From the NCBI GenBank assembly GCA_977016875.1, contig CDRNST010000051.1:3782001-3846000 (forward strand): DNA of 64,000 nt. Direction: 5' to 3'. A program made the translations under genes and the position numbers. The notes beneath the pieces are model-generated. The model had not been told where the DNA came from, searched no databases, and worked only from the letters and a program-made list of their open reading frames with translations. This DNA is from Pavona decussata (lineage: Eukaryota). Positions within the stretch are counted from its first letter, which is position 1. Each line of letters opens with the position of its first letter. Positions 17,100 through 35,000 of the stretch are shown piece after piece.

Positions 17100-20000
17100 C
17101 TGGAGACGGAAAAAGAAAATAGTATGTTGTTAAAGATTTGCAATCGGTAACCTACTCCAGCTGTCACATATTTATGATTGGGCAGATCTGTACTTAGCTT
17201 ACGATCTGTACGTAGCTATGTGTGAAGTGTTTGAGAGACTACTATCTGTTTATCGGGAAGCGCCTCGCATGGGAACTTGCGTCCCGTTCGCGCTCTCCCC
17301 TTGGGAAATGATTAATTATTTTTCTTATATATGATTGTTTTCTTTGTGAAATGAAGCTTATAAACTACAACTAAATTAAACTAACTGCAGCTTTGGGTTT
17401 TGTATCATCAATGTAATTTTCAGTTATTTTACGTTAACTCCTTATGACAAGGCCTTTTTCCCGTTTTCTCTGGCCGGAGGGGTGCGGGGGAGGTCAGGCT
17501 ATAAAAAGCCATGGCAATGAAACGTGGAGGATAGAAAGAACGTTCAAAGATATTTCCTTTGAGGTCCGCAACGAGAACTAATGTCACGTCCTATGACGCG
17601 GAGCATCACAACAGTGACAATAATACCTCTATGCAAGACCTCTTTTTTAACCCTATCTTGACCATGGGGAGGGGTGGGGGGGGGGGATTCTGCTCGCGGC
17701 AACTTTGAACCACAATAACCTTTTTAATATTTGATTAAACGACCTGAAACTTCAAGACTTTTTCAAAAATTTATGTGGGTAAATTGGATGTGGTCGGTTA
17801 GTGTTGATTGACTTGTTTTTCTCAGAAAATAGAAAATACTTTTTTCAAATGAAGAAACATCACTTTTTGTCCCATAGCTTTTATGTTTTCAGCTCACATG
17901 AATTAAATATTCCTTTATTGGTTTTGACTACTTCTCGTTTAATTTCGGCGTTTTCTAACGTTTTGGGAAAATCCAGAAATCCAAGGTGGCGGATCCAAGA
18001 TGGTTTCGGCTTTTCGCAATCATGATCTAAATACCACGTCATATGACGTCATTATTTCGGACTCAAAGGAAACATCTTTAGGCGTACTGTCTTTCCCCCA
18101 AGTCTTACTGTCATAGCTTTTATACTTGCGAAAATATGGCGGGGGGAGGCGGAATNNNNNNNNNNNNNNNNNNNNNNNNNNNNNNNNNNNNNNNNNNNNN
18201 NNNNNNNNNNNNNNNNNNNNNNNNNNNNNNNNNNNNNNNNNNNNNNNNNNNNNNNNNNNNNNNNNNNNNNNNNNNNNNNNNNNNNNNNNNNNNNNNNNNN
18301 NNNNNNNNNNNNNNNNCTGTTCCCCCTGAGTTTTCGGGCAAAATATCTCGGTGCAATGTGTTTAATCTGCTTCCAGCAGTGTATTTGGACAGAGGTGATG
18401 GTAAACATTACGTTTAGAATGCTTCTGGTTTCCGTTGAGTTTGCTCGCTGATTTTAAAAGCATTAATTTCATAGATATCCTCGGAACTCTTAGGACGAAG
18501 AAAGGGGTCCAAAACAGTCCCCTGTTAGTTAAAAGTTCACTTTCTTTAACTCTCAGAACACCGCAAAATCCGTAAAATCCGCCGTATTTTAGAAAAAAAA
18601 ATGAAGATATTAGCAGGTCAACTGCAACTTCAAACTTTAAAACTTGAACGGTACTAATTGCGACTCATTTGACTGTGAAAGCCAATGTCGAATCACAGAA
18701 AAAAAACTAACTGCATATGAAATTCATATTCCCGTTAAATCCGTCATTCCCGTTAAATGACAGAAGAATACATTATTAAGAATAATTAAGAATACATTAT
18801 TAAAATAATATATATAACATATATATTTTCTTAATAGATACTTACAGTAAAAAAGAGAAGTAATATAATAATATATTAAGGATATTTACAGTTAAAATGA
18901 GAAGTATATGATTAGATATTCATATTCCCGTTAAATCCGTGAAATCCGTCATTCCCGTTTCATGACAGAAGTTTGAATTGGTTGAAACTTGCAGTTTTAG
19001 TAAACTGACGAGGCGTTATACATTAGCACAAGCACAACCTCCCTCAGTGGACGGAAATGATGGATTTTACGGATTTGACGGGGATATGAATATCTTGAAG
19101 AATGTTGTGTTTTTCTTATGTTTAAGATTTGATCAGTTCACGGGGAATGTGATGTTTCAACTCAGATGAACTTCTACTACAGTAACGGGAATGACGGAAA
19201 TTACGGATTTAACGGGCATGCGAATCGAATCTTGACTGTAAACTTTCTTACGACTAGCAACCTATCATTTCTTAATTGGCTTTAAACTTGCCATATCAAC
19301 AGCACCCAGCAAGTCTCTTGATAACGAGTTGTAAAAATTTTACACCAGCGAGACCAGAACACTTGCTCATGACTTGATCTCTAGCGCAAATGGATACAAA
19401 ACATGCAAACTCAAAAAACAACATCAATCTGGGAAAAGTCGGCAAACGCGAGTGACGGAAAATACAGATTCAACGGAAATATCAATTGCATCGTTTTTCC
19501 ACGTTAAATAAAGTTCAGTCAGATTCAGTATCTTGGCCGTTAATTTCCTTCGACTAGCAAACGGGAGTGATGGAAATTACGGATTTAACGGGCATATGAA
19601 TTGCATCTTGATTTCTTACGACTAGCAGCCTATCCTTTTTAATTCGCCTTAAGTTTGCCGTATCAACACTACCCAGTAGGTCTCTTTTAAATGAGTTGCG
19701 AGGTCAAAATACGTGTTCATTATTTAATCCCTAGCGCACATGGATACTAAACATGCGAACACAAGAAACATCATCAACCTGGGAAAAGTCGGCAACATTG
19801 ATTATTTTTTTCTTCAGGTTGAATCATTAACACTTTCTGTCAACTCATTGTCCACCGAGAATTTGATGCGAAAGTGCGAGATAAGATTGCGAAACATTAG
19901 ATACAAGTGTTCCGAAGTCAAATTAACATCAACGTCGGTCCTCTTGTTCTCCGCAGAAAAGATCAAAAGAAAATACGGAAGAAAGCTGTGAATAGGCGAA

Positions 20001-23000: not shown

Positions 23001-26000
23001 GCGAAGTCCTTGAAGACAAGTTGAGGAACCATCACCGCAACCTTGGTACACTTGGTTCCAGCGAAGCCTTGCAAGAAAGGAAACGCGTCTGTGTGTCTCT
23101 CGGTCTCCTCCAGAACAGACATCAACATCTAGTGAAGACTGTCCACGAGGCCTTGCCAACCGCACAGGAGCTTGGCGAGTCGTCGGCCTCCAAGGGAAGC
23201 CAAGAAGTTGCTTGTGCACAAGAAGGCACTGGTGGCCGTAGAGGTGATGAAGGGGTGGTGGTGGAAGACGATGACGAAGAGGACCTACAGATGTTTATCA
23301 CTCCAGCACCCAGCTGGCAGACAAGCCACACGGAGTTCGAGAGGACACGGAAGGAAGCCACCAGTGGTAGAAAGAGGCCACGATCACAAAGAGCGCAGTC
23401 AAAGAGATCGAAAAGCGGTCTGGCAATGCCATTACAAGGTACTTTTCCAGCCAGCAACAGCAAGCTGACGAGTGACATTCATTTTCTTTATTTCAATTTT
23501 GGGCATGTTGACTGCGAATGATTCCAGTCGGTTAATTGACAGTGAATAAAATGGCAGCAGTAATGTATGAAATGTTTGGTCTGTATTTCCATGCCAAAGG
23601 ATCACCTGTAGTGGAACCTCGATTTAACGATTTGCAAAGGGCCTAGGAAAATCGGTTGGTTCTATCGGGGGTTTGTTTGAAGTGAAGTGAAGACTTTGTG
23701 ATAAGGAGGTTCGTTAAATCGATGTTCCACTGTAGCAGATATGCTAAACGAACGCGTCGCGGCATTTAACAAAGCGTTAAGTTTAGGCGCGTCGCCCCTA
23801 AGAAAAGTTTTTAAGTCCAGCCCTTTTCTTCAGAGAGTCCGCAGTTCTTCCCCTTTGAAACTTGAACTCAGGATCCCTCAGAATAGCAGTCCACTGTCCA
23901 AACCCGTGATTAGTTATCCCTTCCTTTAGAAAATAGTCCTCTTCTGTTGTGAATTTCAAAACATGACGAATGTTCCGCTGAGAGCGCAAGATTCGTTTAG
24001 GCGGGGCGTCATTTTGCACTGGTTCAACAGAAGGCAGGGCGTTGGAAGTTGAATCGCCGAGTCTTGCGTTGACGTCCTCGTCCACTTCTGACCCCTTAGC
24101 GCCTTGAAGTTTCTGTAGGCACTCATGACCCTTCAAAGCAACTTCGCGGGATCGTTGCTTTTGATAGTGAACTTTAGCAACGGCAGAGCTGTGTTTTTGG
24201 TCTTCCGACAAAATCCTCTGCTCTTCGCTAGTGAGCTGATTGAGGCTCTGCGTTTCAACAATTTGGCGATAACGCGTGGGATGGATGTACTGTCCAATTG
24301 CATCAAACACCAGTTTGCTCATGATCTCGCCCAATTTACCGTGCTGGCCTCCATTTCTGTTGACGAGAACGAAATCACACTTGGGTTTAAGCAAAGGTCT
24401 AACGTACGAGATGTAACCATTGAGCGCTTGCATGTTAGCATCGGAAAGAATCAAAGAATCAAATCCATACTTTCCAGCAGTCTTGAACGTTTTCTGATCA
24501 ATGAATCCACCCTTTTCCTTAGCTGTATCAATCATGTCCACCGTCAAATATTGATAAGTCATAGGACGTGACCCCTTTACTTTGATGAACAGATACATGG
24601 CTACGAATTTCGTGGCAAATGTCAAGTCCGAGGGGTTAACTTGAGCTGGACTCGATTTGCAAATCTTCACGGTATTTTCGTAGCGCGGCAGATGGAATTT
24701 CACGACCTCCAACAGCTCCTCCATTGTTGCCCAGTGGCCTCTTGCTTCCAGTGTTTCAATGTCTAAATCTTGTGTCCACTGCAATCGCATCATCTTTGCA
24801 ACTGTCTTTCGCGCTCTTTTGAGGTACAACTCTGTTGCAGAGAACTTTTGAAAGACTGCCTCTGATGCGCCATGAAGTTTTCTGAAGTCGATCATTTCAG
24901 AAATAGCGCCTATGTAGCCTAAACGCCCACCATGGCCGAGCTTGCATTCGTCTTGTAAGTAGTTGATAAACTTGAACAACAAATTTGGAGAACATAAACT
25001 AAAGTCCACCACGTCAAAAGTCAACTCTTCCTCGTCTTCACAACAAAATCTAAGAAACTTGAGGCATCTTGTAACTATTTGTTGCGCTGCGCGATCCTTC
25101 TTGTATCCGCCACCACTTCCAGTCAACCATTTCGTGAATACCTCGGCAATGTCACACGATAATGAAAACGAAGGAAGCAACTTTACGGCATGCTTTGGGC
25201 TCTCGGTTGTTTGATCTTGAATTGGTTTCACCATTGGAACATTTCGCGAATCCGTGATTTCTTTCGAACTGGGCTTTTCATCAAAATAAAAGAACCAACT
25301 GTGCTTGTTATAAACATGTTTTCTGCACCCTTTTTGACTTTGAAATCCATCATGGTCGCACTCTTGTATTGGGCAGTGATACAAGCTGTCGGTTTCATCT
25401 TTTTCCAAGTGAAGCCGTTTCGGTTTGGGCGACGCTCCATCGATATCCGACCAATCGACTTTATACTTCTTGCTCATTTTGCCTTTTAAGCGCATCTAGT
25501 CAACACGATCTCCTTTAAATGTGAACCATAACCGAGGAGCCGATGACGAGCAAAGGAACTGCATATATGTTTGTATTTGCCAAAGCATGCCCTTACTTGC
25601 CCGCCCTCATTACTATTGTGCAAAATTCATGACAGTGACATGCCACCAAACTCGCCCAAGCAGGTCTGAGCGCGCCTTATCGTTTGCCTCATTCCCAAAG
25701 GCCACCTTAATTTGGAAACAAAATGGGAATGCGTAGAAAAATGGTCCAAAATCTGTTCTGAAACGACCAACTTGGGAACAATATGTTCTATTCACAGAGA
25801 GGAACTCGAAACAAAACAGTCCTAAATGACCAATTCGGGAACAATGTGTTCCATCAACAGAAAGGAACTCGGAACAAAACAGTCCTTAATGACCAATTTG
25901 GGAACAATGTGTTCCATCAACAGATAGGAACTCGAAACAAAACAGTCCTTATTTATCAATTTGGGAACAATGTGTTCCATCAACAGATAGGAACTCGGAA

Positions 26001-29000
26001 CAAAACAGTCCTTATTTATCAATTTGGGAACAATGTGTTCCATGCACAGATAGGAACTCGGAACAAAACAGTCCTAATTTATCAATTTGAGAACAATATG
26101 TTCCATTTACAGTTGGGAACTCGGAACAAAACAGTCCTTATTTATCAATTTCGGAACAATGTGTTCCATCAATAGATAGGAACTCGGAACAAAACAGTTC
26201 TTATTTATCAATTTGGGAACGAAGTGTTCCATTTACAGATAGGAACTCGGAACAAAACAGTCCTAAATGACCAATTTGGGAACAATGTGTTCCATCAATA
26301 GAAAGGAACTCGGAACAAAACAGTCCTAAATGACCAATTTGGGAACAATGTGTTCCATTTACAGATAGGAACCCCGGAACAAAACAGTCCTTATTTGTCA
26401 ATTTCGGAACAATATGTTCCATGCACAGATAGGAACTCGGAACAAAACAGTCCTAATTTATCAATTTGAGAACAATATGTTCCATTTAGAATTGGGAACT
26501 CGGAACGAAATATTCCTCTTTTACACTTAAGTGAACGTTTTGTTCCTACCTTGTAAAACATCTGGTCCTCTTATAGTCAATAGGAACACAAAAACGAGGA
26601 ACAGTCCATACTAGAGGAACGTTCCTTTTGGAATATAGGAACAGCCAACGAAACTTAAAATCAGCGAAAAAAAGAGTCAAAGACTATAGAAAAAATCCAA
26701 AAAGCGTAAGTCAAGCGCTTCGGCGAAATGAAAACGGTCTTTAAAATTTGGTGAAGTCTCATTCAATCGAAGGCAGCAAAATGCGCCAGGATCAAATTTT
26801 GGGAAATGTAGAAGAAGAAGAAGAAGAAGAAGAAGAAGAAGAAGAAGAAGAAGAAGAAGAAAAGCCCAATATAGATAGGGTTAAATTACATTGTAGATCA
26901 ACTGACTGATGTTTTGGCCACTGGTACACCCGAGACTTAAATATTTATTTTCTGTTTTCTAATATGGGATGGAAGGAGGGAGGTTACATAGAAAGGGCGT
27001 TTATCACAGAATCTGACCTCCAAACGGGACGCTCAATGGGGCTTTTGCCGCATATTGTGTTTCGGGAGCCACTTAATAAGCCGACGTCGCGTATGCGTCG
27101 GCGCTTCTATTAACATTCATTTTTCCCTTTTTCTCTAAATTCTCAAGTTTATTTTGAAAATCGGAAATTGCATTCAAATATACTAAATATTAGAGATGAT
27201 TATCGTCAATTTTCTTTTTTCAAATTTCTTGCGCGCCGCCATTTTGGATTTTTTGACGTCAAACGGTTGGCGCTATTGTCATTAAGCAGAAGTTCTTTTG
27301 TGTGAAACTATTGAGCTACTGTATTACGTCATGAAATCCAACATGGCGCCGCCCGAAAAGTTTAAAAGCGAAAATCGGCAATAATTAAATCCTGTTTTGT
27401 TCGGTACGGAAATATTATTTCCATGTTTTCGAACGAAATTTGAAATTAGGTTATATTTTCAACAATTTAACGACAATTAATTTTAAAAGTGGAGGTTTTC
27501 TTTAATAAACGGCACATCATAAACAGCTTTATAGCGAATACAAGCCGTAAAGACAGAGCATTTTGCCGTTTCAATCGTCACCTGTTCACCTTGTAGAACC
27601 GTAGATAGTACATTTTTGTTTTTGGTGTTACGCCACAAATTCAGGCTCGCCGGTGCTTGTTAAAAACAAGTTCATTAACTTTGCTTCCAAACAGATTGCT
27701 CATCAGTAGATGGCGCATCATAAAGAGTTTTGTAGGAAATTTAACCTTAAATACGGAGTAGAGGCCGAGTAGAATTTGAAAAGATTTTTTTAAAATCTTT
27801 TTATAAACTTTTCGCGCATCCTACGGTAAGCAGACTTATATAAATGATATCAAAAGAGGAATTGTGGAGCTCCGCTTTTAGGCTTGGCTAAATATATTAG
27901 TTTTTAGTGGATGGAATTCTAAAACGCACTGCAAGCAGCCAAAGAGTTGAGGATGCATTCGTGACCAAACAACTCTCAGAGATTCCATTTTGTGATCTTC
28001 AAACGATGCGATAACATTTTATCACAATAGAAAGAACATCGTCCATTAAAGCTACAATTCTTTATTTTATACTCTAGGCTGCAAGAAGGAAAGTGCTGTG
28101 CTGTGTTGTGAACAGTTGGGCAAATACGCACACATTACTCTCACCGCTGGATCACAAGGACTTGAGAATTGAATTGACGTAAATTAGTTCGGTGACAAAA
28201 CTGTAAATACATAATTAATATTCCAAAGCATCCGAAATTTTCGAGTTTATTTATTTACTTTCGATATTCTACCTTGCCTGCTTTTCAATTGTAACGGCGA
28301 AACATTGATTTCTTTAATTGAGCTGAACTCCAAATGTTGTCATCGAATTTAATATGACTTATTTTCGTCTCAAGCTACCAATCAAAAGATAAACCCACTT
28401 TAATAGCCTTTTTGCGGAAATAATTACTACCTGTACGTTAGTTTTTTAATTATTGAAAAGAAAAAAATACACGAACATTAAAAATTCCATTTGGCTCACC
28501 TACGAGAAGACCAATGACTAAAGAGTTAGCTCCAAACACCAATGCCTCAAAGACGATGTGATCCATATATTTGTCAATTTGAGAAGGCATATTTTCTTTT
28601 GGAATTCTGCTGACAGCTCCTAACACCAAGTTAACGAAGGTGACCGTAAGAGATGAGAGCATTAACTCGTTTTCGAACGGATCCACCATTGGTTTCTTAT
28701 GGGCGAAGAACACTGTGTAGATACCTGATATGATACAGGCTAGACCAATGTAAGATCTGCTTTCGCTTTCCACAAGGATCAACCCAGATGTTAAAACGAC
28801 CTTTCGAAATGTTTCTATCAGTTCCCAGTACCACGAGCAATCGTTGTAATTCTCATAAATAAATCTCAGTCCAGCGAATATCTCCGAGTTGTGAGCGTTG
28901 TTGACGGAATCATTTTCAACTCTGTTGTGAGCTCTTCGTTGCTTATAAATGAACACCAGAGATGCGGTCGGTAGTAAGATAATATAAAGAATTGCACAAT

Positions 29001-32000
29001 ATGCAACGATGACTCTTTGGTTAAATACACCCTCGCATTCAATAGTATAGTCAGCCTTGAGGAACTCGTGGCAATTTTTTTCTGCTTCGTCATAACAAAT
29101 TCTGTGGCAGGCAAGGGGAAGAACGCTTACTGTCTTTGAGCACGTGGACAGGTATGTTATGAAAAGGAAGAAAAACAAGTTTCGGTAAATCAACTCTTTC
29201 GTGTGCGACATTTTCTTCAATTTCTTTTCTTGGCTCCAAGGTTTCCTTGATAAAATGAACTTGGTAAAACCATAACAAGCAAACGCCACGACTATGGCAA
29301 AAACATTTATTGCAAGCGTGACATATAAGCTTGCAAATGCATCATACGTATCGCGCTTTAACTCTGGAAAGACGCACTGCACAGGAGCGATCTGAAGAAG
29401 GTTCAGCTGTAGCATCTCGGAGTACTTTCCAACATAGACAAGAGAGTCCGGCCATTTAATGTAAGAGAAGGCTTCTAGAATTCCAGAGGTTACTTGATAG
29501 AAGCCAATTATAATTTTTAACCTCCCAAGAATTATGTCCACTGAGGAACGTACTTTGATGTCTTTGCTTTTCTTTCTGCTTGTCCAAACCACGACAAGAA
29601 AAACTGTTAGAGATACTACCGTTATGATAGAGAGCTGTACGACCGTCCATGTCTTGGTTGGACACTTCTCGCATCTTTTTAGCCATTTGTAATGTCTAGC
29701 ACTGCACACTTCGCATAATGGACCTTCATAACCAACGTCACAAGTTGAATGTAAACCTCCCAGACACGAAACTTGTCTGGGACATTTATACAGTCGGGGA
29801 AGTTTGTGTTGGTAGGAAATGAGGACATAATCAGGCGATGAATGACTGATGTGTAGTTTCGGACTGAACGAAGCATTTTCAAGAATTCTTGTAAAATTAT
29901 TGTAAAGTTCTTTGTGTGTTGGACTCTCCTCTGGCCACTTCCACCAATAACCTTTTTTCAAAGTAGCGTAGTCATTCGTACATTCCAGTCCATCTGTGAC
30001 ACATCGTTTGCATCGTTTGAAGAGATGATAACGGTGGAATCCATCTAAACATTTACAGGCACGAAATTCTGCAAATGTACTAGTATTTGTGCCTGCACAG
30101 TCAAAAAAGAACATTTGCCAAGATTAAACATGTCACTCCGCTACAAAAATCTCGTACATAGTAAAACTTGGGAGGGTTACTGCAGTTGAGCTTCGAGTAA
30201 TAATACCGTCTTCGTTTGGCCTAACAGAAGTTTAGAAATTTCTTATTAGTTAATATACTTACACGCTCTTTAATCGACGGCAGACACGTGATCGCCAAAG
30301 GTGGAGAGCCCGAAGAGCCCTTTTACAAGTCTGTTTGAATTCTTCAATATGGTAAGTAATATTGATAGAGAACGAACTTTATTGATATAAAGTCTGTGAA
30401 CAGAATCATTAGAATTTGGTCGTTTGACGGCAATCCATAAAGAAGTGAAGAGCTGTTCAAAACCATCGCAGTACTAAACTATGCTCGGGCTAGCGATCAA
30501 ACGGGTCACAAAAATCTACGATCATCGCCAGTTTTCGTTGGGAAGGTTATAAGACAAGCGTGGTGTAGCAATTTTTATTAGTTTTGTTTGTCTACGCATT
30601 TGTTTGTCGTTTCCTCCCAAAAAACCATCATGAGACCTTGTTACGCGTCTGTTGAAATATTATGCGCAAAACACAAGGGGGCATTAGGTTGCCTGGAGGG
30701 AGATGATTGTCGCCGAAGCTCTCCGAGCATGGCACGAGGTATCAAGGGGACAAAAGAGACAATATAGGAAACTGAATACCACGTCGCTGACTCACTTGGG
30801 GTGGGGTTACGGAAACGGAAGTCAAGTTCGGCATTTACCGCACACTGAGCCTTTACTAATTCAAGTTGAAAACAACAGCTGATCATTAACTGATAACATG
30901 GTCCAATGAAGGACCGAGACTCGAGTCTTGCTTAAGAAAGAAATTAAACATTTGCAATAAGAAATCATCGTAGCATCCTTGAGAATTACGGGACTGTATC
31001 AGGAGCCATTAATGGGCTCCTGACTGTATCAAATTGTTTTACATTGAAATTTCATTTAAATTCGAGTAGCGCCACGAAACCGTTGAGGTACATTCTCGTT
31101 CGAAGAGCACAGATTATTTAACAAGGCACCATACAACAACTGCAAGAAGCCGTAGCTCTGAACCCATAAAGGCTAAAACGGCTTTGCCAACTGACGTGGT
31201 TCAAAACTAATTCAGGAGATGGTTTGTTTGTGAACTTCTAAAGGAAATTTGCCTTACCGTTTAAACGGGGAATCTTATGATTTGTCCACTGGTGCAAACG
31301 TGAAAAGGGAAAGATATATCTAAAGCTAAGACTGTCACGTTCCAGAGCAGTTTTTACTTAAGAGCCTCAAGAGCATTTAACACACTTCCAGACTTCTTGA
31401 GGGACAATACAAAATCTATAGACGTATTTAAAACTAATTTGAGGGCATACTACCTAGATTTGACTTTAAATGTGTACGATCCCGCAGTACCTCAAACTTT
31501 CAAAAGTGTCTGCATAAAATGTCATCAAAGCAGATCATTACCTGTATTATTAGTTAAAAGGTGTTGTTAAATAGTTGTCAATACTTAATTGATATGCTGT
31601 AATTTCATTTATGCAAGGAGTCTCGTGATTGGAACTTATCGTTCTGTGAGCTCTCTCCTGTCAGAGGTTTCTTCCTGATCTTTTTTTTTTCTCCTCTGGC
31701 GAAGTTTATAAATAAATAAAAATAAACGTTTCATTGTGAAATAGTAGGGAAGCGTAGAGCGTATAGAACTGCATGTTTTTTATTTCATTATTTGAAGATT
31801 TTTTGATGCGATCCACCCTTTAAGTATTGACATATCGACGTAACCTCTTACTGTCTAACATTTCTTTTCTGTGTTTTAATTCTTCTGTCGTTGTTGAGAA
31901 TTCAACAAGGTACATACCACGATAACAGATTCTAAATGGAGAAATGATTTGTTCAACGGTTTTGAAGATTTGATTGCCGGTGAACTTCTTGATACCATGT

Positions 32001-35000
32001 ACTTGTCGTTTGATATGATTTACCTTGTGGACAAGCTTTGCAGTCCCTTGCGCTAGTTCCAGGAGCTATGTCATAGGGAACGAACGTTCCAGTGGGGCAC
32101 ATTCTGCAGCTATCGTTTACATAACCTTCAGTGTCCGAGTAGAAGCCGCCTATAAGAGGTAATGAACAAAAATTTTGTGGTCATCCTGTTAATAGCAATA
32201 GTGCTGCATGTTAGGGCTTGCAGCGTAGTTTATATAATAAGATACACTTCCTTGAGTGACAAATGTCATTTTGACAACACTCCAATGAAATTAAGTAAAC
32301 TATCAAAAACAAAATATATTATTTCTTACTTTACTGCAAGTGATATCCCTTTGTTCTTTATGGCGATTATATTGAATAATCCACGGTAAACTACCAGCAA
32401 TTTGATAACCCACAAGGGGCGACTTTAAGGTGACTTGTTTGCTACATCTGGGTTGCGTTTTTTTGGTGCTAAAGATTAAAACAATTTGTTTGAATTTTGC
32501 CCCCCTAAATTAAAGATTTCTGCAAATTTTCTTTCTTTTTTTTTTTATTCTCTGTGTGGAAGGAGCTAAGAAGGAACTTACCAGCTGGACATTCTAGGCA
32601 CTTGAGCTCACCAGAACCTTTGACAGATTTATTCACAAACGTCCCCAACGGACACGGAAGCAAATGGTCTTTACTGGAAGAAAGAGCGTGGGCAAATCCA
32701 GATCGAAGAAGAGCCTCACGTAAAGATTCCCTTACATTTTCGTGCTCGTTCGAAATGTCGATGAACTCAGAATCATTCTGCCCTAAGCCGCTAAAGACAC
32801 AAAATTAATATGAAAGCGAGGTAAATGAAACACAATCAAGGTAAATCGATGAAAAAACCTAATTACGGTTTCCCAACATTGTTTCAGTTGTAAATACGTG
32901 AAGCACTTACAGGTGGACTGTGCAAGTATGATTTGCATCTACAAATCTCATGATGCCGATCTTTTCTTCATCCAAGGTTCTAGGAAAATAAAACAATTTC
33001 AATATGACTATTACTTTCACCTTCTGGTGATTTGGACAAGGTTCCAATTTATATTTCCTTAACTGGCTTTTTCAAATTGAAGTTATAAAAATAAAAAAAA
33101 AGTGAAGACGTAACGTTTCTACAAATGGAGATATCAGAAGCCTCTTCAGACAAGCAAACTTGTGCACTGATAGTACTGTGAAACATGAAAGGAAGAATCA
33201 GATAAGTTAGGGGAAAATATAAATAACTAAGCAACATCACAATTGGCCAACTTAATTGTCTAGAAACAGACAAATAAACAAGAGAACAAAACAACGCATG
33301 TGTTAAACCATTCATAGGTTTTACTTCAAGAAAACCAGGAAGTCCGTTTTATCCAGCTTTTGCAAAGCACATTTTAGTTACTGTTCTCCTATTTGTCAAT
33401 TTGGTGCCATAATTATACGCTATTTTTTACCATGGCCCTGTTAGAGCCATTTGTTATTATACATAATCAAACAACTTCTAATAATATGACTGAAAACGAA
33501 GCTACCAAATTTAAAAAAAATAAGGAGTCCATCGTATAGAAAAATAGATCTTACTGGTTTTAATGTGACTTACTGCTATCTCAACACTGTTTGTAATAAG
33601 GTATGAGTTGTGTTCCCAAAATACGTTTCAAATAACCTATTTGAACACTGTTTGTAATAATCTATAGTAGTTGTGTTCCCAAAATACATTTCAAATAGCC
33701 TATTTTAATCATGTTTTTTGCATAAAATACTTCCAAAATCGATGACAAATCCGATCCGTGTTATGAAATACAGTTTAACTATACTTCAAAATACATTTCA
33801 AACAGGTACCAAAATTTGAACATTTCTGTAAAATAGCATTAAAATACATGATGTTGCCTTCAAAATAGTGTTTAAATCATTCAAATACATTTTAAATACT
33901 TTCAAATCAGTTTTAAAATACAGCTGCTTTGGTAAGGGAACCTCCTTAAGATGATAACTCTTTTTACGGCCACTTTTTGTGGGAAAATGTCTAGAATTAA
34001 TTTCCTTGTAGCTTTTACATTTCTTCGCCAGTTTAGAGTTTCTGAATTAATAACCCATGTTATATGGGTTATGTGTGAATTAATTTAGCTGGTTATCAGC
34101 AGTTTTAGAGAAAACGAGAAATTCAAGATGAAGAATCCAAGATGGCCCCTCTGGAAAACAAATGAGGTAATTTTCACGTGATATGACGTTATCACCTTAC
34201 TTGAAGAAAAAGTCGCCATTTTTTAAGGTGAAGGTGCTTTTTTATTTTGTTAAGCTAGGAAATCTTCAATTTGAACAACATCTTTAAGTTTTGGAAGAAA
34301 TATATTAAGACTTGGAGCAATGATTTTGGCGATAGTGGAATATGGTTTGTTAGCTGTTAGAATAATGTGGTTGAAAGTTTCCTAAAGCCCAAACAGAATG
34401 TTCACAGGATTTAATAAATTGATAGCGGTAGTTCATTGTTGGAGTCAGCCTGAAAGTTTTGATTTAAATACTTTTCTATCGCGAAAAAGACAAATGAAAT
34501 GTCCTGCTTTCTAAGAATGTAAATTTTGACAAAAATGCTAATAATGCTTGTTGAGCGAGAAGCTCTCCCTTATGGATCCCGAAGCGACTAAGAAATACAA
34601 CCACATATCTCCTGTTTAAGCGTGCAGGCTGACCCAAGGGGATTTAGGACTTCAGATCTCGGGGTTGAAACATTGCGGGCGCCAGAGCTCCAAGACAAAA
34701 ATTCAGGGCTCTGGGGGTCTATGCCTTCCCTCCATGGCTCTATCTAGACAAAATCAGCAATTTTGTCTGGGTATCAACTAGGCTTCGGGATTCACGACAA
34801 AATTTTCTGGGTTCCTGCAGGGCTTCAAAGATCCCCCTTTCGGACCCTTGATCATCGATACTTACATACTAATTGCGAAGTTGTCAACCTTGTCGAACGA
34901 CTGAACGCTGAATTTTTTTAACTTCGTCCGTATTATGTATCTAAGGAAACAAAAATGTTTAATTTAAAGAGCTATTTGGTAAAATAAAAAATAATTACAG

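Follow-up and report, generated by a model that had tools for sequence, protein, structure and literature searches.

The 64,000-nt stretch of Pavona decussata DNA analyzed here (contig CDRNST010000051.1, positions 3,782,001–3,846,000 of the forward strand; hereafter the window, whose positions are used as coordinates throughout) contains a mobile, site-specifically integrating two-gene element of anthozoans. The element is ~8 kb in length and is without reverse transcriptase (RT), capsid or PolB genes. One of its genes encodes a D5-like superfamily 3 (SF3) helicase and the other a recombinase-like protein, and an origin-like arm lies upstream of the helicase gene. We consider it probable that this mobile, integrative element is Crypton-like, carries a replication module and is copied as an excised circle before it reintegrates.

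The two long open reading frames (ORFs), 21041..23521 on the + strand (826 aa) and 23798..25495 on the − strand (565 aa), are convergent, 276 nt apart and uninterrupted in the window copy, as described in an earlier note on this DNA. The 3′ intergenic region between them (23522..23797) contains a 30-nt inverted repeat (23601–23630 and 23711–23740), and the G+C content of the coding block is 42–50%, compared with 34–39% in the surroundings. The earlier note drew the element from 18317 to 26861, and neither position turns out to be an element end. The first is merely the first base after an N run (18157..18316) that adjoins the helicase-side arm and may contain the unseen helicase-side terminus. 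On the other side the element ends at 26809, and the (AGA)17 microsatellite that follows (26810..26861) is flanking or target DNA. The repeat arrays assigned to the element are all present (a 63-nt array, AT-rich arrays and (AGA)17), the last of these lying outside it. No inverted copy of the terminus motif was found in the readable window, no second copy of the element within the window, and no tRNA or Rfam match in 17000..28000. The window copy is apparently young and intact, with one terminus unseen beside the N run.

The limits and gene content of the element are best seen in its relatives. Using the window's recombinase-like protein, 80 related loci were fetched from coral-associated metagenome contigs; several of these represent the same site in different samples, and locus counts are therefore not fully independent. 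Two complete copies have both termini and two genes only: L006 (439 to 8596, 8158 nt) and L013 (154 to 7961, ~7.8 kb). Neither the window element nor these complete copies, whose other ORFs have no family match, yielded a primase, RT, RNase H, capsid or PolB gene. More than 30 partial copies also show two genes only, and no capsid-like ORF was found. The earlier claim that RT and capsid are absent holds between both termini of complete copies and extends to PolB.

The termini are inverted, 13–16 nt in length, and each abuts a six-base pyrimidine core beginning with TC. On the recombinase side, similarity between the window and ten loci halts at a single base, 26809, beyond which the flanks differ. 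The terminal inverted repeat occupies 26794..26809, and the adjacent subterminal region (26518..26793), which has many GGAAC motifs, aligns with the ten related loci up to the terminus. This terminus motif is present at 17 distinct junctions, and in 16 of the 17 flanks the last six bases are TC followed by four that are mostly pyrimidines. It also served to correct the recombinase-side boundary first assigned to the L004 family. The inverted partner on the helicase side is found in L006, L013 and L052, and in a variant form in L063 and L065.

The six end bases of one copy agree only in the first three or four positions (L006 and L013), and there is therefore no target duplication of fixed length. 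CT-rich microsatellites with units that fit the core flank the element in the window, as (AGA)17, and in L020, L025, L026, L037, L043 and L056, and three of five helicase-side flanks are also microsatellites (L006, L052 and L063). With strict scoring, microsatellites are present in 4 of 17 flanks versus 0.5–1.5% of random 30-mers; the L026, L043 and L056 microsatellites come on top of these four. The frequent insertion in CT-rich microsatellites may be explained by such repeats offering a TC-pyrimidine core in every register.

Two loci, L017 and L069, contain head-to-tail junctions in which exactly one six-base core separates a helicase-side terminus from the recombinase-side terminus after it. 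The junction arms are inverted, extend for 12–13 nt and surround the six-base spacer, an arrangement that corresponds, by analogy, to the sites on which tyrosine-type site-specific recombinases act. Since L036 overlaps L069, that junction at least consists of two elements in tandem. A different arrangement is seen in L052 (1391–2162), where there is no helicase gene and the helicase-side terminus is located ~770 nt past the recombinase gene, beside a (CTTT)n tract; from its sequence this copy looks like an internal deletion derivative. Copies L018, L023 and L035 are also without the helicase gene.

Linkage of the two genes was testable in the 38 loci with at least 1.5 kb of sequence past the recombinase gene 3′ end. 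In 34 of these, a helicase homologue is convergent with the recombinase gene at a distance of ~140–1350 nt from its 3′ end, which supports the view that the two genes form one unit. Members of the L004 family are 99% identical over 7.1–7.7 kb at five or more different sites, and at the sequence level this identity marks recent activity. Together with the sharp inverted termini, the differing flanks and the head-to-tail junctions, the near-identical copies bear out the integrative and mobile nature proposed in the earlier note.

The recombinase-like protein has relatives in 941 clusters at 90% identity, the top 120 of which are 82–100% identical. Named relatives come from Oculina patagonica, Porites lobata and Nematostella vectensis (at least 13 copies) and are annotated as ‘uncharacterized’ or ‘Myb-like domain-containing’; those of the helicase come from Montipora, Acropora, Oculina, Porites and Desmophyllum. 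The Nematostella vectensis copies, at least 13 of which fall in one 90% cluster (P0452), are ~65% identical to the coral copy L020. On sequence comparison, this could stem from vertical inheritance over a long time under strong constraint, or from transfer from one anthozoan order to another. Between subfamilies, the ratio of nonsynonymous to synonymous divergence (dN/dS) of the recombinase gene is 0.09–0.13, indicating strong constraint, and the conserved domains of both genes diverge together (Spearman 0.85, n = 17, representing only about five independent lineages). An open frame is seen in 16 of the 40 full-length recombinase genes and in 7 of the 24 long helicase exons from the related loci; the others are interrupted.

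The helicase gene (20270..23521, +) was previously taken to be one long ORF, but two further exons are found upstream. Its three exons are open throughout and total 2940 nt, a multiple of three. Exon 1 (20270..20471, with a GT donor at 20472) encodes a Cys-rich N-terminus that is 62% identical to residues 1–69 of P0124, and exon 2 (20555..20841, bounded by AG at 20553–20554 and GT at 20842) is 60% identical to residues 67–169 of the same protein. Exon 3 (21071..23521, preceded by AG at 21069–21070) lies within the long ORF. P0124 is a predicted Desmophyllum pertusum protein that runs straight on from the exon-matching residues into the helicase ORF. The gaps in the gene begin with GT, end with AG and keep the frame. 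Protein-level conservation of both upstream exon pieces, which use other reading frames, is seen in the L004 family (E 1e-27 to 1e-28), with exon 2 at the corresponding position, and the opposite strand scores far worse. The exons were searched one by one, and neither exon 1 nor exon 2 has a Pfam match.

Identification of this protein as a helicase is settled through its relatives and its fold, because the window protein itself has no Pfam, PDB or PHROG helicase match. The Walker A motif GxxxxGK(T/S) is located at residues 302–309 of the long ORF, the Walker B residues DE at 348–349 and a candidate arginine finger at R408. Across 25 relatives, G302, G307 and K308 do not vary, and the conservation of E349 and of R408 is 90% or higher; the motifs reported earlier are conserved. 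A full scan with residues 1–450 yielded 828 representative relatives. We considered the curated SF3 family models PF19263 (DUF5906), PF00519 (PPV_E1_C) and PF00910; the relative P0210 passes PF19263 (33.9 bits versus a cut-off of 27.6) and P0132 passes PF00519 (28.5 bits versus 26.5). Many close coral relatives carry precomputed SF3 family domains, one of them is named ‘SF3 helicase domain-containing protein’ in UniRef, and a profile of the 25 sequences has papillomavirus E1 as its best match in the PDB (E 0.003).

The AlphaFold2 (AF2) model of the helicase ORF has an overall predicted local distance difference test score (pLDDT) of 78, mostly above 85 over residues 130–450 (21428..22390), where a D5N-like collar and SF3 ATPase domain are predicted and the order of the ATPase strands fits. 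In Foldseek searches this model matches monkeypox virus (MPXV) E5, vaccinia D5, the SaPI5 primase-helicase and African swine fever virus (ASFV) PrimPol over 340–420 columns with E 1e-10 to 1e-8, and giant-virus D5 proteins and phage P4-type primases in a viral library with E 1e-14 to 1e-9; the probability is 1.00 for MPXV E5, vaccinia D5, SaPI5, ASFV PrimPol and the giant-virus D5 proteins. By modeled fold and by the family matches of its relatives, the + strand gene is a D5-like SF3 helicase. No family match to a fused primase domain (AEP/PrimPol or Toprim) was found in exons 1–2 or in residues 1–125 of the long ORF, and searches of the protein gave no nuclease motif or family. The N-terminus is modeled with low confidence, and the C-terminal 375 residues are acidic, of low complexity and helical; the C-terminal half has no match in Pfam.

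The recombinase-like gene (23798..25495, −) encodes an open frame of 565 aa with three regions of interest: (i) a C2H2-type zinc-finger motif at residues 39–65 (25301..25381), in which C41, C46, H60 and H65 are invariant in 30 relatives; (ii) a candidate tyrosine-recombinase catalytic region at residues 306–450 (24146..24580) and (iii) a C-terminal Myb/SANT domain of the TRF1/TRF2 type at residues 514–558 (23822..23956), matching PF00249 with 25 bits versus a cut-off of 24.4. The putative catalytic residues are R310, K338, H405, R408, H435 and Y444. They are kept in 28–30 of 30 relatives that are 59–95% identical, so this part of the earlier assignment of a recombinase with an R-K-HxxR-H-Y set stands, while no family model supports it and the fold matches are weak. 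K338 sits between two short predicted strands in the AF2 model, in which residues 20–70 (pLDDT 81–88) and a helical domain at residues 110–230 are good. As a lead, the spacing of the catalytic residues resembles that in XerD and Cre. Based on the sequence motifs and weak fold matches, together with the DNA site, the 565-aa protein is likely a tyrosine recombinase. It is mainly the DNA site, a six-base spacer between inverted arms, that makes the assignment likely.

Upstream of the recombinase gene is a 63-nt tandem array with 11.9 copies (25768..26517) that is degenerate out to 25642..26572 and occurs at the same place in many related loci. An 8-mer from the terminus recurs in six of the array units, always in one orientation. 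Elsewhere in the window, at 33576–33705, a 63-nt unit is present in 2.1 copies, each with a terminus-like 8-mer on the opposite strand; this repeat has no further similarity to the element.

The helicase-side non-coding arm (18317..20269) has a layout that matches the arms of L006, L013 and L063, and parts of it match the arms of L004, L006 and L074. Within it is an origin-like region (18553..19611) with seven clusters of 9-nt iterons of the ACGGATTTN type, three in one orientation (18553–18580, 18717–18757 and 18914–18973) and four in the opposite orientation (19036–19095, 19184–19235, 19445–19496 and 19560–19611). Strict matches to the iteron motif number 10 in this ~1.06 kb versus 15 in the remainder of the window. 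An AT-rich tract with small tandem arrays lies between iteron clusters (18764..18920), and a dyad (18914..19095) is formed by 60-nt inverted arms that contain iteron clusters, are 80% complementary and are separated by a 62-nt spacer. As single-stranded DNA, the segment 18905–19105 folds at −45.8 kcal/mol (z = −9.4), and none of 200 shuffled sequences folds as well. The same iterons, and an AT-rich palindrome, are present in the arms of subfamilies with helicases that are only 41–69% identical.

For the outer end of the arm, relatives offer a guide. In L006, ~290 nt separate the last iteron cluster from the terminus, and the same spacing would put the left terminus of the window copy inside the N run; in L063 the distance is ~165 nt. 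A left terminus near 18427 was considered and dropped, as this position is without the terminus motif and without a matching core, and a long terminal inverted repeat (18317–18620 with 26500–26809) was also dropped since it consists of a single 18-nt match. In relatives, the counterpart of the AT-rich tract is an AT-rich palindrome at which contigs of the L004 family break or invert; from the sequences, this could be an effect of assembly or a real inversion. The outer ~420–520 nt of the arm are flipped between contigs (L006:7897–8316 versus L012:8431–8949), and contigs that differ in this way share an insertion site (L006 and L009), as would be seen for a real inversion between inverted iteron clusters or for an assembly artefact.

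These features suggest how the element could move and multiply. The 565-aa protein would act as the recombinase, joining the ends of the element into a circle, and the circle junction would then recombine with a TC-pyrimidine core in the genome. Recognition of the termini, and of the terminus-like 8-mers in the 63-nt array, is probably the role of the zinc finger and the TRF-type Myb domain. We infer a circular intermediate of which the junction is the recombination site and TC-pyrimidine cores are the targets; it is the head-to-tail junctions that suggest excision as a circle, and tandem copies would produce them too. SF3 initiators recruit host polymerase, and facing iterons with an AT-rich tract and a dyad beside an SF3 helicase gene are the usual layout of an origin. 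In the element, the primase-less helicase may bind the facing 9-nt iterons across the AT-rich tract and dyad upstream of its own gene, open the DNA at the iteron arm and bring in primase and polymerase from the host. Copying of the excised circle would then precede reintegration and raise the copy number. Episomal replication, which the sequence of the helicase and of the iteron/AT-rich/dyad arm suggests, is the less well supported part of this scheme.

Several observations weigh against the interpretation as a replicating, recombinase-mobilized element. The window copy shows one terminus only, and the head-to-tail junctions may represent tandem copies in the chromosome. The iterons may serve as accessory sites for the recombinase or as promoter elements. 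The helicase is missing in 4 of the 38 testable loci and, since L052 keeps the helicase-side terminus, it is not needed in cis. It also diverges much faster than the recombinase (dN ~0.41 versus 0.15), with helicase dS being saturated. Several loci repeat one site, and metagenome contigs of repeats can be chimeric. The 565-aa protein has no match to PF00589, SAM-like or DUF3504 models even at E 10, and no match to a PHROG integrase or PDB recombinase by sequence or profile. Comparison by hhalign with a bona fide DIRS-type recombinase (the L036 ORF) gives a probability of 0.1%. The AF2 model of this protein is poor (pLDDT 61 overall and below 50 in the catalytic part), and although XerA (E 0.06, probability 0.87) and Cre (E 0.4) are the best Foldseek matches among 350,000 chains, none reaches E 0.001.

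The alternative that survives best is a plain Crypton-like transposon in which the helicase has an accessory role, such as in excision or strand exchange, repair of the donor site or protection from silencing, and there is no episomal replication. The iteron arm would then be a regulatory or recombinase-accessory region. We regard this as rather unlikely, though all of the evidence for mobility stands without replication, a primase domain was not found, a helicase-less deletion copy keeps its terminus and the helicase diverges fast. Helicase-free Cryptons also gain copies (PMC9977147). Such a transposon does not readily account for an SF3 helicase gene that is immediately preceded by facing iterons, an AT-rich tract and a strong dyad, for the conservation of the iterons across subfamilies with such divergent helicases, or for a helicase that keeps every ATPase motif.

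Goodwin 2003 is reportedly among the sources for Crypton DNA transposons. Like Cryptons (Kojima and Jurka 2011, PMC3212892; PMC9977147), the coral element is a DNA element of eukaryotes that encodes a tyrosine-recombinase-like protein but no RT. Both insert via a short core common to the element end and the target, and neither leaves a target duplication of fixed length. An active CryptonF of Chlamydomonas inserts by short core identity and still gains copies (PMC9977147). Cryptons occur in Nematostella and other animals; these animal Cryptons have no terminal repeats and no C-terminal domain, and their recombinases match DUF3504 at E 8e-12 or better (PMC3212892). The coral element, in contrast, has 13–16-nt inverted termini, a zinc finger and a C-terminal Myb domain, and no DUF3504 match, and it adds an intron-bearing SF3 helicase gene, an iteron arm and a preference for microsatellites. 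The Nematostella relatives of the recombinase-like protein also differ from the Crypton-1_NV protein named in PMC3212892. Crypton is the closest animal category even though the tests for animal Cryptons fail, and published descriptions set the element apart from it. A RepeatMasker label, ‘Crypton-H’, occurs only in the annotation tables of papers.

The element could also be a reduced, helper-dependent endogenous small DNA virus or satellite, related to Polinton-like viruses or virophages, that has lost its capsid genes or never had them. We think this improbable. The gene pair is typical of Polinton-like viruses (PMC4642659, PMC11131425), the nearest folds of the helicase are giant-virus D5 and a phage-satellite helicase, and the size and circular logic are like those of small DNA replicons. 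The complete and partial copies, however, show two genes only and no capsid-like ORF, the helicase introns are of the spliceosomal type and common to relatives, and hundreds of near-identical chromosomal copies exist in several coral genomes and Nematostella. Polinton-like viruses and virophages share the pair of integration and replication genes and the integration into eukaryotic genomes (PMC4642659, PMC11131425), but they are 14–40 kb in length with major and minor capsid, packaging ATPase and protease genes, compared with 8.2 and 7.8 kb and two genes for the coral copies. The D5-like primase-helicases of Nucleocytoviricota and poxviruses have the same D5N collar and SF3 ATPase fold; the coral helicase differs in its low identity to them (10–16%), the lack of a primase domain, a long acidic C-terminal extension and the location of its gene in a transposon.

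The SaPI/PICI and P4 satellites encode a tyrosine-type integrase and a D5/P4-type helicase, and have iterons flanking an AT-rich tract beside the helicase gene. The coral element resembles them in its integrase-like gene, helicase and iteron/AT-rich origin-like arm, features known here from sequence alone, and the SaPI5 primase-helicase is among the best fold matches of its helicase. The satellites, however, are bacterial, depend on a helper phage and have packaging, interference and primase functions, none of which were found in the coral element, and the latter has an animal (anthozoan) host, a spliced gene and no further genes. By analogy, the closest functional counterpart would be a SaPI or P4-type phage satellite without packaging genes.

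A further possibility, which we judge very unlikely, is that the 565-aa protein is a sequence-specific DNA binder with a zinc finger and a Myb domain but is no recombinase, integration being carried out by another activity such as an unrecognized nuclease in the N-terminal part of the helicase or a host enzyme. Consistent with this, all sequence-model tests for a recombinase failed, the fold evidence is below significance and, as a rough estimate, the bare residue pattern is expected by chance in ~5% of proteins of such length. A profile of the 30 relatives matches only the Myb domain in the PDB (TRF2, E 6.5e-6). Set against this are the conservation of the catalytic residues with a spacing like that of XerD and Cre, the emergence of XerA and Cre as the top fold matches, a DNA site in which inverted arms enclose six bases, and target duplications that have no fixed length. 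The helicase protein also has no recognized nuclease motif or family. Our assignment of a recombinase draws on motifs, weak fold matches and the DNA site, with no support from family models. Finally, the window is rich in other transposon remains and an N run lies beside the unit, but the explanation as two unrelated nested elements or an assembly artefact is practically refuted by the same convergent pair, spacing and termini in 34 of 38 loci from independent assemblies.

Two other groups with tyrosine recombinases can be compared. DIRS and Ngaro retrotransposons are animal tyrosine-recombinase elements with a presumed circular intermediate, but have RT and RNase H and a recognizable Phage_integrase domain, neither of which is present in the coral element. 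A true DIRS-like neighbor in L036 is recognized at once by Pfam: at 10664–12608 of this locus, past the AT-rich center of the helicase-side arm, a Phage_integrase match (E 6e-10) is adjacent to RT_RNaseH, and this retroelement is probably a nested insertion. Another flank, L011:454–2645, contains DUF1759 and aspartyl-protease ORFs, the gag-pro region of a BEL/Pao-type retrotransposon. Yeast 2-micron-type plasmids are eukaryotic nuclear DNA circles with a tyrosine recombinase that acts on inverted repeats; they differ from the coral element in being non-integrated, in having no helicase of their own and in using the recombinase for copy amplification.

The window contains several further features of interest. 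A second, unrelated helicase-bearing element is located at 38306–44154, where 8–9-nt iteron arrays of the CGATTCTNC type (38306–38751) face inverted arrays (43325–44154). It has a 531-aa ORF (39643–41238, −) with a CxC5 (KDZ-transposase-associated) domain, ORFs at 41606–42091 and 42027–42857 (+) with pieces of DUF3987 (a P4/D5-type helicase domain), and a 50-nt unit repeated 9.3 times at 38761–39226. A G+C-rich block at 4000–10000 (45–46% versus ~37%) has several ORFs, one of which (8702–9475, +) matches the ALOG domain with E 5e-18. The ALOG domain has been linked to the DNA-binding domain of DIRS1-type recombinases (PMC3537659), and the block is probably the remnant of a recombinase retroelement. 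An open frame of 554 aa at 28450–30114 (−), 1.6 kb from the element, has a Cys-rich start, a weak match to DUF7630 and belongs to a two-member nameless cluster. Directly to the left of the N run, at 17504–18121, are 60-nt inverted arms that are 77% complementary, 498 nt apart and contain G-runs; this may be a small inverted-repeat element.

In the literature searched, we found no description of a recombinase, a helicase and an origin-like arm combined in an animal element, and all named relatives of both proteins are ‘uncharacterized’ coral or Nematostella entries, apart from names derived from domains. It is possible, although we put this forward only tentatively, that the family represents a new class: an integrative replicon with its own origin and SF3 initiator helicase, and with a very divergent tyrosine recombinase aimed at CT-rich microsatellites. 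Reef-building corals and Nematostella contain the family in abundance, as young copies that are unannotated, and because it inserts at microsatellites it matters for the annotation of coral genomes and the reading of structural variation in them. Since current family models fail to detect the recombinase-like protein, similar elements have probably been missed elsewhere.

Cryptons, which have a recombinase only, excise and reinsert conservatively and yet gain copies, and how they do so is an open question (PMC9977147). A family with a replicative helicase and an origin-like arm would make this question testable by sequence data. It would place in animal genomes an integrase–helicase–origin module that phage satellites, integrative plasmids of archaea and bacteria, and Polinton-like viruses are known to have, and it bears on the exchange of modules between small DNA viruses and transposons. 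If the proposed scheme is correct, it would reveal a way for a conservative recombinase element to gain copies, and the family would be both a eukaryotic counterpart of bacterial phage satellites and integrative plasmids and a living link that joins Cryptons to the small DNA viruses and Polinton-like viruses with the same gene pair.

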